Shown in pieces: positions 19,768 to 30,565 of a DNA stretch of 64,000 nucleotides. Positions within the stretch are counted from its first letter, which is position 1, and each line of letters starts with the position of its first letter. The notes beneath the pieces were generated by a model. It saw only the letters and a program-made list of their open reading frames with translations. It searched no databases and was not told where the DNA came from. Both the position numbers and the translations under genes were made by a program. Origin of the DNA: Bigelowiella natans CCMP2755 (taxonomy: Eukaryota; Protista; Cercozoa); assembly GCA_000320545.1 (NCBI GenBank), contig ADNK01001382.1, forward strand, positions 18,706 through 82,705, written 5' to 3'.

Positions 19768-22700
19768 ATGGGAGGCGGACTGAGCAAGGAGGTCTGGGAA
19801 GCTGTGGAGAAGAATGACCTAACTGCGCTGAAACTGCTGATCAAGAAAAATGCAGATATCGAACAGAAGGATAGAAAAGGTTAGCTTGGTTGGGAACGGA
19901 GAGAGGCAGGGTTAGCGAGACTCTGGGCGAAGAATATTCGAAGGGTTGATGAGAAAAAAATGAATGGGAAAAGAGCACGGAGCAGTCATGAAACAAGCAA
20001 AGTTCGTGATGGGGGACGACGGAGTTGACATTTTTCATGAAGCACAATGAGCTTGAGTTCGAATGATGATGTCACTTCATGCAGAGGCTAAAGTTTAGTG
20101 GATTTGTAGGAAACAGCAGCAACCTTCATTGATGTTGACCATGAGGATGCAAATAAAACTCATGTTAAGAATAACTGATGTGTACTTAAGTGTGTATTTG
20201 GGCAGTTGTGTAGTGTTTGGTGTTAGCCTCTTTGATGAGGCTGGTAACTTAGCAGATTCTTTTGTTTGTTGTTTGATGTACTGTCATTTCCGAATGATGA
20301 TTTGTTGGGTGCTTTGTTTTGCCAGGTGAAACCCCTCTGTTCTATGCGTCGAGAAAGGGACACGAAAGGATCGTGACGTATCTGGTTGAGTCGAAGGCGA
20401 ACATCGAGGCGAAGGATAATGGCGGTGAGTAAGAACATTCGAGTTAGTGCGGCAGGATTTTTTCATGCACATTGAGGGATAGAATGACACCAATGAAGAG
20501 CATGAATCATCACATTGAATGAGCATGAAGATTCCATCTGAAAATGAAAGTATAAACGATAAATACCAATCTTGATGCCAATCATGAGGATGCCAACACT
20601 GCTCATGTTATGAAGAGCCGATGTGCATTTAACAGTATGCATTTGTGGAGTTATATAGCATTTGGTGTTAGCCTTTTTGATGAGGCTGGTAACTTAGCAG
20701 ATTCTTTTGTTTGTTGTTTGATGTACTGTCATTTCCGAATGATGATTTGTTGGGTGCTTTGTTTTGCCAGGTAGGACCCCTCTGAGTTTTGCGTCGAGAA
20801 AGGGACACGAAAGGATCGTGACGTATCTGGTTGAGTCGAAGGCGAACATCGAGGCGAAGGATAATGACGGTGAGTAAGAACATTCGAGTTAGTGCGGCAG
20901 GATTTTTTCATGCACATTGAGGGATAGAATGACACCAATGAAGAGCATGAATCATCACATTGAATGAGCATGAAGATTCCATCTGAAAATGAGAGTACAA
21001 GTAGTAATAAAGGAAGAAAGAGGAGGAGGAGGAGGAGGAGGAGGAGGAGGAAAATGAAAGCATCAAACTGTCCCATCATCAACAAACGACAAATACCGAT
21101 CTTGATACCAATCATGAGGATGCCAACACTGCTCATGTTATGAAGAGCCGATGTGCATTTAACAGTATGCATTTGTGGAGTTATATAGCATTTGGTGTTA
21201 GCCTTTTTGATGAGGCTGGTAACTTAGCAGATTCTTTTGTTTGTTGTTTGATGTACTGTCATTTCCGAATGATGATTTGTTGGGTGCTTTGTTTTGCCAG
21301 GTAGGACCCCTCTGAGTTTTGCGTCGAGAAAGGGACACGAAAGGATCGTGACGTATCTGGTTGAGTCGAAGGCGAACATCGAGGCGAAGGATAATGACGG
21401 TGAGTAAGAACATTCGAGTTAGTGCGGCAGGATTTTTTCATGCACATTGAGGGATAGAATGACACCAATGAAGAGCATGAATCATCACATTGAATGAGCA
21501 TGAAGATTCCATCTGAAAATGAGAGTACAAGTAGTAATAAAGGAAGAAAGAGGAGGAGGAGGAGGAGGAGGAGGAGGAGGAAAATGAAACCATCAAACTG
21601 TCCCATCATCAACAAACGACAAATACCGATCTTGATACCAATCATGAGGATGCCAACACTGCTCATGTTATGAAGAGCCGATGTGCATTTAACAGTATGC
21701 ATTTGTGGAGTTATATAGCATTTGGTGTTAGCCTTTTTGATGAGGCTGGTAACTTAGCAGATTCTTTTGTTTGTTGTTTGATGTACTGTTATTTCCGAAT
21801 GATGATTTGCTTTTGGTGCTTTGTTTTGCCAGGTTGGACCCCTCTGATCTATGCGTCGGAAGAAGGACACGAAAGGATCGTGACGTATCTGGTTGAGTCG
21901 AAGGCGAACATCGAGGCGAAGGATAAATGGGGTGAGTAATAATATTCGAGTTAGTGCGGCAGGATTCTTTCATGTACATTGAGGGATAGAATGACACCAA
22001 AGAAGAGCAGGAATCATTACACCAAATGAGCATGAAGATGCCATGTGAAAATGAGAGTACTAGTTGTAGCAAAGGAAGAAAGAGGAGAAGGAGGAGGAGG
22101 AAAATGAAACCATCAAACTGTCCCATCATCAACAAACGACAAATACCAATCTTGATACCAATCATGAGGATGCAAGTAATGATGATGTAAAAAACAAGAG
22201 GGATTTGAGAGTGTTAGAGAGAGTGTTTAATTATTTGAGTGCATATGTTTGTATGTTTATATTCGTGTGTGCTTGTATGTGCTTATGGGTGATTGCGGTG
22301 TTTGGTGCTAGTTGTCGAAGAATGTTGGTTAATTAGTTGACCGCTTGTTCGCTCGTTGTTTTTCTGTTTCGTTCGAATTATCATCATTTGCTGCGCGCAC
22401 CTGAATTTGCCAGGTTGGACTGCGTCGGATTTAGCAAATGAGCGTATCGACAGAATCCTTAGGACGGCGAACCAAAACAACAATGTATGATTTAGTACAT
22501 GCCCAATGCGATGTATTTTTGGTACATGCCTAATGCGATTAAATATTCCGTATGTTCAAAACGACAGGGATTGTCTTAAAATTCTCAGATACGAAATACG
22601 AAATATAAACAATGTTTGATGTTTGAATAAGGCGTTTGGCTATCCATTATATCCCGACAACAAGAATTGATTAACTGTTGTCCCTTTTCTCTCGTTTCCT

Positions 22701-28552: not shown

Positions 28553-30565
28553 TGTCTTTTCCATGTTTGACCTAGTAACGACTCCAAATTCATCTCTAAA
28601 CTTCGTTAGGACAATAATGTTGAAGTACCTGCCCACCTGGCATTTGTATTTTCTCTCCCTTTGGACAAGCCAAGTTCTATCTTGGATCTAGAGAAAGATG
28701 ATTTAATGTTGCATGATATGATCAAAGACAATGATTGTAAAGCTGGTGCTGTCATCGATCACTGTAAGCTTCACAAATCCAGATGGAGAGCTACTAAAGA
28801 AAATCTCTCTAGAGCTTTGCGGTCAAACTGTTTTGCATTGCTGGTGGGTTGCCATTGCACCAGGGAACACGGACTCGAGTTTGAACACGATAATCCCGGA
28901 GGAAAGGCAGTTTATGTAAGTCCTGATGAGTTTTCCCAATTGGTAATGGAGACGAAAGAAACGCCGAAGATGTGCTCTTTGAAAATATTGATGCTGGCTG
29001 CATGCCAGAGTAGAGATGTAGCTAAATCATTTGTTGATTCAAAAGCAGTCGATCATGTAATAGCATGCAGAATAAATGATTTATTGGGCAACAAAGTTGT
29101 GCGGATATTCCAGACGGTCTTTTTTGAGAAGTTGTTATGCGGGGCTACGGTCTCAACCGCATTTCAAGCTGCCAAGAATAAGCTAAAACATATGGCCGAT
29201 ACGTATAAAAAAGAGGCTGAGAGACTTGAGAAACTCATCAAGAATCCCAAAACATTTGACAATAAGCATGATGAATACGCAAGTCGTGCAAAGAGATTGA
29301 CTAGAAAGGAAAAAATGCTTAACGAGGAGGTCCAAAAGTACCTCTTGCTGCCTGCAGACGGGAACCATGACGTTTCATTCTCATTTAGACCATATTTCCC
29401 TCCCACCACAACACTCAAGACGTGGATCCCTGCTCACCCAAACAAATTCTATCTAGCTCCGTTCTGCAAGCAACTGAAATGGGCGAATGATCACTATTTG
29501 CAGCTTCGGAGGAACCTATACGCAGCTATGCAACATGACCATGAAACTTCAATGCGTCACCGCTGGGTGCAAATCACAGGGCCAAAAAGGATAGGAAAGA
29601 CCTCGGTAGCAAGGTACATTGCCTGGCGTCTAAGTCTCTACGACAAGGAAGGACCTGACGGCATCTTTTGGGTAGAGTCATCATATTCTCTTTCATTCTC
29701 TTTCATGAACAGAATTGGTAATAATCATAATAACTATTTTTCCTGTATGGATCAAAAATTCAGGTTGCGGGGGGAAAGAGTCATGACGAAGTGATGCTAA
29801 ATTTCATCAAGCGTTTTCCCAAAACCGTATTGTCGCGCACGGAAAAGAGTGAAAAACATGATCCTTGTGGATTGATGAAGGAGTTCTTCGCGGAAAGAGA
29901 AAATCCTCCCACGCTACTGGTTTACCATTTTGCTTCTACTTCCCAGATTTGAGTCATTCTAAATTTAAACCAATTTTTTCACCCAGATAATCGATGATGC
30001 AGATGATATAAAAGCAGAGGATCGCGTGAAGCTCTTTGAGAATCTCATGAACCTGAACCCAAGACTGCACATCCTCACGACATCATTGAGTCCAATCCAA
30101 GTCAGGGGCTTCGACTCCAATGTATGGATTCATTGCTTTCCGTGCATATGCATGTGGTTCGCCCTCAATTTTTGTTTAGAAATCAATTTGCTTTTGAACA
30201 GAAAGCAGATCTGAAGTTGGAAGTGCCTAGGATCATGTTCCGGAAATTTTTCCAAAAGCGAGCTGATGAGTTTCAAGATTACAAATTTCAGACCCTAGTC
30301 AAAAATAAAATGAAGCCGTATCATTTTTCTACACTGTGGGGTAGGTGCCTGACCGATGCATCGTGTAACATTTTCTTTATTTCCCATCATTTTTGTTAAT
30401 TGGTAATTTGGTGTATTAGATTCAGAGGTGTTTAAGGATGTTCATCGGAATCCCCGAACTGCAATCCTTCTCGTAGAGAAAATCCACGAAATGGGGGTAA
30501 AAGAGATCAAGAAGTCCTTTCTAGTCGATGCCTTTAACAAGTTGGTTGAAGAGAAAGCTCTTTGA
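19768..30565 (+). CDS. Ankyrin-repeat ROCO (Roc-COR) protein fused to an EF-hand-like motif, a CHAT caspase-like protease and a STAND (NB-ARC-like) NTPase; NLR-like receptor, multi-exon
   Basis: Exon 1 (19768-19879) MGGGLSKEVWEAVEKNDL (MGxxxS myristoylation motif). Ankyrin exons 20326-20424, 20771-20869, 21301-21399, 21833-21931 and cap 22414-22483. Roc G1 VMIVGKEHTGKTT (22836), G3 VWDFAGQEVFYTSHVMFL, G4 IILVGTKID. COR VPSQW...MLQKFHDQGVAIYF...IVMRPQHLVD...YLVPSMM. GGINFEEFIELM. CHAT 28610-29180. Walker A GPKRIGKT (29579), Walker B LLIIDDAD. Stop at 30563-30565. Could be two genes split at ~27518/27655. Confidence 0.8.
20130..22175 (+). repeat. Tandem array of ~530-bp exon+intron cassettes, each carrying one 99-nt ankyrin exon
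   Basis: Exon starts at 20326, 20771, 21301 and 21833 (spacings 445, 530, 532). Introns are near-identical between units; the first lacks ~85 bp including the (gag)n tract. Confidence 0.95.
24047..24128. repeat. Intronic polypurine (GAGAGAAA)n-type tract, one example of the many intronic microsatellites (GA, CA, TA, TAG, GAT, GAG, CAG)
   Basis: agagggagaaagagagaaagagagagaaagagagaaagag... inside a ROCO-gene intron. Confidence 0.8.
28610..29180 (+). other. CHAT (caspase/separase-clan CD) domain
   Basis: AFVFSLPL..ILDLEKD...RATKENLSRAL...LLVGCHC (His 28853)...GLEFE...LKILMLAACQS (Cys 29003)...VDHVIAC...FQTVFFEKLLCGATVSTAFQAAK, followed by KYLLLPADGNH. Confidence 0.8.
29560..30565 (+). other. 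STAND / NB-ARC-like P-loop NTPase domain with no C-terminal repeats
   Basis: WVQITGPKRIGKTSVARYIA...DGIFWV, PTLLIIDDAD, LHILTTS (sensor 1), HRNPRTAILL (GxP-equivalent); the protein ends shortly after. Confidence 0.8.

Follow-up and report, generated by a model that had tools for sequence, protein, structure and literature searches.

Gene structure and transcript evidence

The 64,000-nucleotide (nt) stretch of Bigelowiella natans CCMP2755 contig ADNK01001382.1 analysed here (the window) contains, at positions 19768-30565 of its forward strand, one expressed, spliced gene. Its predicted product of 1,580 amino acids (aa) joins a scaffold of ankyrin repeats, Roc GTPase, COR domain and helical linker to a CHAT protease domain and an NB-ARC-like ATPase, all within one protein (Table 1). 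Inspection of the open reading frames (ORFs) of this region revealed no long frames and many short stop-free pieces on the forward strand, a pattern typical of an intron-rich eukaryote. Approximately 40-48% of sampled words from positions 24900-30800 were present in each of 20 public runs, which fits contigs that are RNA-derived and hold exons only.

We aligned contigs of runs X1, X3 and X4 (three studies), together with the raw RNA run X21, to positions 24900-30800. The contigs of the three runs display GT..AG joints at every intron from 24994 to 30419 and, once these joints are adjusted by the cut offsets given for them, all exons between 24909 and the stop codon splice into a single open frame. 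One X4 contig of 2,287 nt covers exon 26 through the last exon, and its overlap with the contig lying upstream extends over the 26849|26920 splice junction. A reading made earlier from the sequence alone (the sequence-only reading) had left open that transcripts might end at a TGA codon at 27516-27518. This is ruled out, as the codon falls in a spliced intron; contigs of all three runs join 27499 to 27683 and continue to the stop codon, giving a single transcript across 27400-28700.

Upstream of 24909, GT-AG sites and the reading frame guided manual construction of the exons, which are backed by exon-by-exon collinear matches in paralogues. The X1 contig reaches 1,112 nt upstream of exon 16, while modelled exons 6-15 total 1,090 nt; by this arithmetic the contig ends about 22 nt inside the last repeated ankyrin exon, where a break in the assembly graph is expected. 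Profile and fold searches were carried out with single exons or with database proteins covering spliced parts of the gene (P0002, P0102, P0113 and P0116), while the joined 36-exon protein was built and compared in local scripts.

The public gene model for this locus, JGI Bigna1 135602 (P0102, 600 aa), matches aa 981-1580 of our model at 100% identity and starts at an internal methionine, Met981, in exon 30 (28023-28117). The transcript-derived protein P0002 corresponds to aa 1194-1580 and, like P0102, agrees with the spliced C-terminus (99.7-100%). As P0102 covers the C-terminal part only, the public model is truncated at its N-terminus, 980 aa short of the RNA-supported frame, and it is corrected here.

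The internal start of P0102 could alternatively mark a separate 600-aa CHAT-ATPase gene lying next to an ankyrin-Roc-COR gene, an arrangement to which two further observations lend themselves: in X4 the depth of the 3′ contig is about double that of the 5′ contig, and the close paralogue C1554 has no ROCO part within 9 kb upstream. We consider two adjacent genes very improbable. Exons 28-29 and 29-30 are spliced in frame in contigs of three runs, none of which begins at exon 30, and contig depths are alike over the ROCO and CHAT parts in X1 (62/87/50) and X3 (75/137/116). ROCO kinases have, between COR and kinase, a linker to which the first 55 aa of P0102 are homologous, so that these residues belong to the upstream scaffold; the fused paralogue proteins P0113 and P0112 span the junction; and the order of the parts is kept on five other contigs.

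Just past the stop codon (from 30567 on), the X1 and X4 contigs diverge from the window and extend for at least 255 nt. The additional sequence is absent from the window and is similar, though not identical, to the local 3′ untranslated region (UTR), while the X3 contig tracks the window as far as 30626, beyond which adapter sequence begins. We rejected the X1/X4 tail as an extra exon; it is probably an assembly switch to a paralogue or allele, with the 3′ end of the mRNA probably near 30626.

Table 1. Features of the ankyrin-Roc-COR-CHAT-ATPase gene (positions in the window)
Feature	Position	Strand	Details
Whole coding region	19768..30565	+	36 exons, 1,580 aa, every intron GT-AG; ATG 19768, stop 30563-30565
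MGGGLSK, N-myristoylation consensus (Gly2, Ser6, Lys7)	19768..19788	+	From sequence and paralogue starts
Ankyrin array	19768..22484	+	Exon 1 is the cap; C-terminal cap exon 22414-22484; Pfam Ank E=2.4e-7
Four full ankyrin exons	20326-20424, 20771-20869, 21301-21399, 21833-21931	+	99 nt, phase-1, 33 aa each
Roc GTPase	22749..24797	+	Pfam Roc
Roc G1, GKEHTGKT	22836-22862	+	
Roc G3, DFAGQ	23842-23856	+	
Roc G4, TKID	24281-24295	+	
COR domain (COR-A + COR-B)	24909..27782	+	~aa 553-950; 14 small exons
Intron containing TGA 27516-27518	27500..27682	+	Joint 27499 to 27683, GT..AG, contigs of X1, X3, X4
Helical COR-to-output linker	27683..28377	+	~aa 950-1035; kept in ROCO-kinase paralogues P0116, P0117; holds Met981
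GGINFEEFIELM, supposed EF-hand	28095-28281	+	Intron-split; within COR-to-output linker
Phase-0 intron, scaffold/cassette junction	28378..28609	+	Between ROCO scaffold and CHAT-ATPase cassette
CHAT caspase-like protease domain	28610..29254	+	
Segment with His1117, predicted catalytic	28838-28873	+	LLVGCHCTREHG
Segment with Cys1167, predicted catalytic	28988-29011	+	LMLAACQS
Long helical linker and beta hairpin, protease to ATPase	29255..29521	+	P0102 predicted model, helices 236-296
NB-ARC-like P-loop NTPase	29522..30565	+	Nucleotide-binding domain and first helical subdomain only
Walker A, GPKRIGKTS	29579-29605	+	
Walker B, LLIIDDADD	29914-30007	+	
ILTTS	30065-30085	+	
GLPL-like, RNPRTA	30443-30472	+	
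Intronic microsatellites	21020-21051, 21550-21581, 23741-23774, 24351-24393, 24616-24687, 27552-27587, 27879-27951, 28509-28550		

N-terminus and ankyrin array

The MGGGLS start picked out by the sequence-only reading extends to MGGGLSK, and two paralogues begin MGGGLSK (C2356) and MGSGSSK (C3059), so that an MGxxxSK start is kept in both. We infer from this motif N-myristoylation and membrane anchoring of the predicted protein.

Each 99-nt ankyrin exon encodes one repeat. The exon-plus-intron units of ~530 bp are 97-99% identical, pointing to recent tandem duplication, and all ankyrin exons are symmetric, such that skipping or duplicating any one of them preserves the frame. The variation was characterized on a small sample of nine repeats, drawn from the target and from its closest paralogue (C2356). 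A run of 17 codons shows no nucleotide difference among these repeats, and 10 of the 12 variable codons alter the amino acid. The five repeat positions with at least four residue types are ankyrin consensus positions 2, 3, 5, 13 and 14. Designed ankyrin binders are randomised at six positions, and these five are among them; a hypergeometric estimate, again on this small sample, puts the chance of a five-position overlap at ~2.5e-5. The variability of the ankyrins suspected from the sequence is thus real, and across the nine predicted repeats it is confined to the canonical ligand-binding surface positions.

Among the three near-identical ankyrin units at 20326-21832, four of the eight intronic substitutions are TA versus CA/TG, numbers that are too small to judge.

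Roc-COR scaffold and linker

The Pfam Roc profile scored 29.9 bits on exon 12, which carries G3 (cut-off 27), and gave weaker matches on the G1/G4 exons (E=9e-4, exon 13; 0.017, exon 7). The G1, G3 and G4 motifs are intact, in agreement with the sequence-only reading. A low-complexity insert of ~130 aa lies between G2 and G3 (exons 23003-23731), and its exons are also found in paralogue C2356 and in P0113 and P0115.

The COR domain was recognized chiefly through paralogues. Exon 17 alone returned COR-A at E=0.049, while profile A3, built from exon 17 and paralogue exons, matched the C. tepidum Roc-COR structures 3dpu and 6hlu (E=3.5e-4), and all six of its members matched Pfam COR-A (6/6). Model aa 553-1034 align with aa 1-489 of P0116 at 57.6% identity, and P0116 itself scores 49.7 bits for COR-A. 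The fold was computed on this paralogue rather than on the target: the predicted structure of P0116:1-500 (predicted local distance difference test score (pLDDT) 79, predicted template-modelling score (pTM) 0.73) resembles C. tepidum Roco 3dpt over its entire COR domain (E=6.7e-12, template-modelling score (TM) 0.67), and also LRRK1 and LRRK2. A Pfam COR-A scan of the whole genome, exon by exon, missed the target locus, and single-exon Pfam searches over the COR-B, linker and ATPase regions returned no match. Taken with the paralogue profile and the identity to P0116, the predicted fold supports the COR assignment.

The sequence-only reading had also proposed an EF-hand-like motif, GGINFEEFIELM, which we reject as an EF-hand. 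P0102:1-60 had no Pfam EF-hand match at E<=1, calcium-ligand positions 1, 3 and 5 of the loop are occupied by S, I and K, and the only Foldseek match of the linker was to a calmodulin sensor, at a probability of 0.35. The stretch is instead a predicted helix-loop-helix of the post-COR linker that is common to the ROCO-kinase paralogues.

CHAT protease domain

A HMMER scan with exon 32 over 1.84 billion representatives returned 101 matches, 94 of which were then domain-scanned. Pfam CHAT was present in 82 of these 94 outside relatives, many of which also carry NACHT, NB-ARC or AAA_16, and eight paralogous places in the B. natans genome score above the Pfam CHAT cut-off. Family profile A2 matched the SAVED-CHAT structure 8tl0 (E=1.7e-18). 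The predicted model of P0102 (pLDDT 84.4, pTM 0.81) returned 8tl0 chains as its top Foldseek matches. In the family alignment, the catalytic Cys never varies and the His hardly does; in the target these residues are Cys1167 and His1117. The CHAT domain seen by the sequence-only reading is therefore recovered by family profile, paralogues and predicted structure, and not by Pfam on the protein itself.

C-terminal NB-ARC-like ATPase

The ATPase family profile matched Sr35 (1e-11), AfsR, Apaf-1 (9e-10), MLA13, Roq1 and ZAR1 (E values ranging from 1e-11 to 1e-7) and was weaker on classical AAA+ proteins (Hsp104, 6e-6). Foldseek matches included the NRC3, NRC4 and Sr35 resistosomes. No sensor repeats follow the ATPase: the stop codon is confirmed by the contigs, P0002 and P0102, and the sole repeats in the protein are the N-terminal ankyrins. 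Profile and fold thus uphold the description of the C-terminus as a STAND-type NTPase that ends without sensor repeats. The expectation that profile searches would recover CHAT and STAND was borne out in part, as family profiles, paralogues and predicted structure retrieve them while Pfam thresholds on the protein itself do not.

The protein ends 35 aa past the GLPL-like motif, and only a helical bundle follows the core in the predicted model. The winged-helix (ARC2) subdomain and the MHD region are lacking, and TTS stands where NB-ARC proteins have TTR. With neither a winged helix nor the sensor-1 arginine, it is uncertain whether the ATPase acts as a switch. The ATPase could accordingly be a degenerate, non-switching scaffold, leaving a ROCO-regulated CHAT protease with one working nucleotide switch (Roc), a reading that its early end, missing parts and below-cut-off Pfam P-loop matches would fit. 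We regard this as doubtful, since paralogues and distant relatives alike conserve Walker A (GKT/S) and Walker B (DD), both of them intact here, and the nucleotide-binding fold is confidently predicted (pLDDT ~90). The claim of two nucleotide switches flanking a protease therefore stands as to layout, with CHAT flanked by Roc-COR and by an NB-ARC-like P-loop, and is left uncertain as to the second switch, which is an incomplete STAND module.

Paralogues and origin of the fusion

Exon 32 has 48 matches across the 91-Mb B. natans genome. Five other contigs (C2356, C3059, C1834, C3236 and C1548) are collinear with the target through ankyrins, Roc, COR, linker and cassette, and by this sequence comparison the gene is one of at least six paralogues that share this part order and form a lineage-specific group. 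P0113 (JGI 86157, 1,378 aa) contains Roc, COR-A and the cassette in a single annotated protein, and P0112 spans the scaffold-cassette junction in another paralogue. The CHAT-ATPase cassette also occurs at at least 25 other places in the genome with TPR, kinase or other modules, including L013 and L014, where it follows N-terminal TPR arrays. Partner domains in the outside relatives of the cassette are SH2, SAM, PB1, FHA, LRR and SPRY, and Roc or COR was found in none of the 94 outside relatives scanned (0/94).

The scaffold is most closely related to ROCO kinases of B. natans itself (P0115, P0116 and P0117). Homology to these stops at aa 1034, where their kinase follows, and homology to cassette-only CHAT-STAND proteins begins at aa 1036-1040. 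This breakpoint coincides with the phase-0 intron at the scaffold-cassette junction, suggesting that exon shuffling exchanged the output module; the simplest reading of these sequences is that a kinase output was exchanged for a CHAT-ATPase output. The sequence-only reading had instead pictured an NLR-like protein whose sensor had moved to the N-terminus. This view is not sustained, as the CHAT-ATPase cassette appears to have replaced the kinase of an ankyrin-Roc-COR-kinase scaffold.

Several individual paralogues are of separate interest. C2356 (L020 7436-9633, reverse strand), with exons up to 98% identical to those of the target, lies on the next-numbered contig, where units of 518-530 bp contain its five ankyrin exons; one repeat carries an in-frame TAA in place of a conserved GGA (Gly), indicating a skipped pseudo-exon or a pseudogene copy. 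C1554 (L029/L022, G000:C1554:1-12499) is a close cassette paralogue (59-66% identical) without ROCO exons within ~9 kb upstream, showing that close cassette relatives are not all fused to a ROCO scaffold. At L015 4229-9492 (forward strand; G000:C3401), a 1,104-aa ORF with two tandem CHAT-NACHT cassettes in one reading frame lies downstream of a 480-aa protein-kinase ORF, and the second cassette is 73% identical to target exon 32.

Comparison with known systems

A literature search found no published description of a ROCO plus CHAT architecture or of a Bigelowiella NB-ARC/CHAT architecture. Together with the lack of Roc and COR in the 94 outside cassette relatives, this agrees with the proposal that the architecture was undescribed. 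Its halves, taken singly, have recognizable counterparts.

On the scaffold side, LRRK-type ROCO kinases, including P0115-P0117, likewise have ankyrin or LRR repeats, the Roc G1/G3/G4 motifs, a full COR domain and a post-COR linker, whereas the target has CHAT and an NB-ARC-like ATPase in place of the kinase, no LRR or WD40 and the ~130-aa Roc insert. In brown algae, LRR-ROCO and NB-ARC-TPR genes that encode each repeat on its own exon have been put forward as candidate immune receptors (PMC11378527); LRR-Roc-COR represents the sole ROCO architecture reported in that paper, with no protease or ATPase. These genes resemble the target in their symmetric one-repeat exons, tandem exon duplication or shuffling and membership of the SAR supergroup. 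However, their repeats are LRRs on 72-nt phase-2 exons, whereas those of the target are ankyrins on 99-nt phase-1 exons. In bacterial conflict systems, Roc-COR ('AP-GTPase') stands in for the STAND NTPase (PMC7159879), whereas in the target both are predicted within one polypeptide.

On the output side, fungal and bacterial protease-armed NLRs carry a CHAT or S8 protease, a NOD and then TPR, WD40 or ANK repeats, and some control gasdermins (PMC12881547). The target shares with them a CHAT domain just N-terminal to a STAND-type P-loop, a His/Cys dyad, an expanded family and repeat arrays that are hypervariable yet internally conserved. It differs in having neither C-terminal repeats nor a winged helix, and its N-terminal repeats are parted from the cassette by Roc-COR. 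The best profile match and best fold match of the protease domain, SAVED-CHAT of type III CRISPR (8tl0; entry title 'activated SAVED-CHAT filament'), is a CHAT protease activated by oligomerisation; unlike the target it is prokaryotic, has a cyclic-oligonucleotide-binding SAVED sensor and lacks an NTPase. The NB-ARC of Apaf-1 and plant NLRs is similar in its Walker A, Walker B and GLPL-like motifs, and the family profile matches Sr35, Apaf-1, Roq1 and ZAR1, whereas the target is without the winged helix, second helical subdomain and MHD and has Ser for the sensor-1 Arg.

Predicted function

Our preferred reading is that the fusion gene encodes an ankyrin-sensed protease receptor gated by Roc-COR and by the ATPase; as a whole, we give it a probability of roughly 0.6. 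In the mechanism that we propose, the N-terminus would anchor the protein to a membrane and the ankyrin surface would bind a variable ligand, possibly non-self. Binding would be relayed through a GTP-dependent dimer/monomer switch of Roc-COR, and the ATPase module would drive oligomerisation. The CHAT domains would thereby be gathered and undergo proximity activation of the kind seen in SAVED-CHAT filaments or apoptosome-type complexes, and the active protease would cleave substrates leading to defence signalling or cell death.

By analogy, the protein looks like a protist immune or cell-death receptor, a role suggested by three comparisons: fungal CHAT-NLRs, SAVED-CHAT filaments and brown-alga ROCO genes. 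The same fused gene might alternatively serve ordinary intracellular signalling, with the ROCO scaffold controlling a processing protease, for example in cytoskeletal, vesicle or stress functions. Dictyostelium and animal ROCO proteins act mainly in signalling and trafficking (PMC6337361), and in brown algae many stresses elicit a response from ROCO genes (PMC11378527). The target itself is expressed in at least three studies with no known challenge, and no gasdermin was found in an exon-by-exon Pfam search of the genome. Such a role nonetheless seems unlikely to us, given a family that is large and diversified and has a pseudogene-like copy, hypervariability that stays within the binding surface of the ankyrins while the remaining positions are homogenised at the nucleotide level, and a CHAT plus NB-ARC cassette typical of conflict systems (PMC7159879, PMC12881547).

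Several points weigh against the gated immune or cell-death receptor favoured here. As to the gene, the exons before 24909 have no direct read sighting, the contigs of X1, X3 and X4 are assembled and do not thereby prove one molecule across all 36 exons, and the deeper 3′ part in X4 would allow for an extra, shorter transcript. As to the domains, Pfam CHAT (PF12770) was absent on exon 32 and on P0102 at E<=0.1, the AAA_16 and AAA_22 P-loop matches of Pfam on the target alone were all sub-threshold, and the ATPase, incomplete as it is, may bind nucleotide without switching. As to function, the ankyrin comparison covers nine repeats from two paralogues, the gasdermin Pfam search of the genome gave no match (a weak test, made exon by exon), and the immune or cell-death role is drawn from analogy.

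More broadly, and only tentatively, B. natans may possess a repertoire of membrane-anchored, protease-armed receptors in which ankyrin surfaces diversified exon by exon sense non-self, a GTP-driven Roc-COR dimer switch and an ATP-driven NB-ARC-like oligomeriser gate the caspase-like CHAT executioner in series, and exon shuffling can exchange the outputs, kinase or CHAT-ATPase, on a shared ROCO scaffold. If true, this would be a protist innate-immune or cell-death system of independent evolutionary origin, in which LRRK2-type and NLR-type signalling would for the first time be linked naturally. The ROCO (LRRK2-family) and NLR/STAND proteins, both major classes of large signalling machine gated by nucleotides, have so far been described separately, and the predicted fusion indicates that serial wiring of the two onto a protease is possible. 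It also offers a testable case of a kinase versus protease-ATPase swap on a single scaffold. The family would add to the evidence that unicellular members of SAR have expanded, fast-evolving receptor repertoires, and its one-repeat-per-exon design parallels those of brown algae and fungal NLRs.

Intronic repeats and neighbouring open frames

The introns of the gene are rich in microsatellites, comprising (GAG)n, (TG)n, (AC)n, (TA)n, (AT)n, (CA)n(AG)n and (TC)n tracts. Just upstream of the gene, on the forward strand, lies an uninterrupted open frame of 1,436 aa (14051-18361) whose only Pfam match is TPR_12 (E=8.6e-11). It has a GC content of 0.56-0.60 and an A-over-T skew of 0.14-0.33, and its intron-free length is unusual for an intron-rich genome. 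A 390-aa open frame at 12694-13866, also on the forward strand, encodes a RhoGAP domain (E=2.4e-20).

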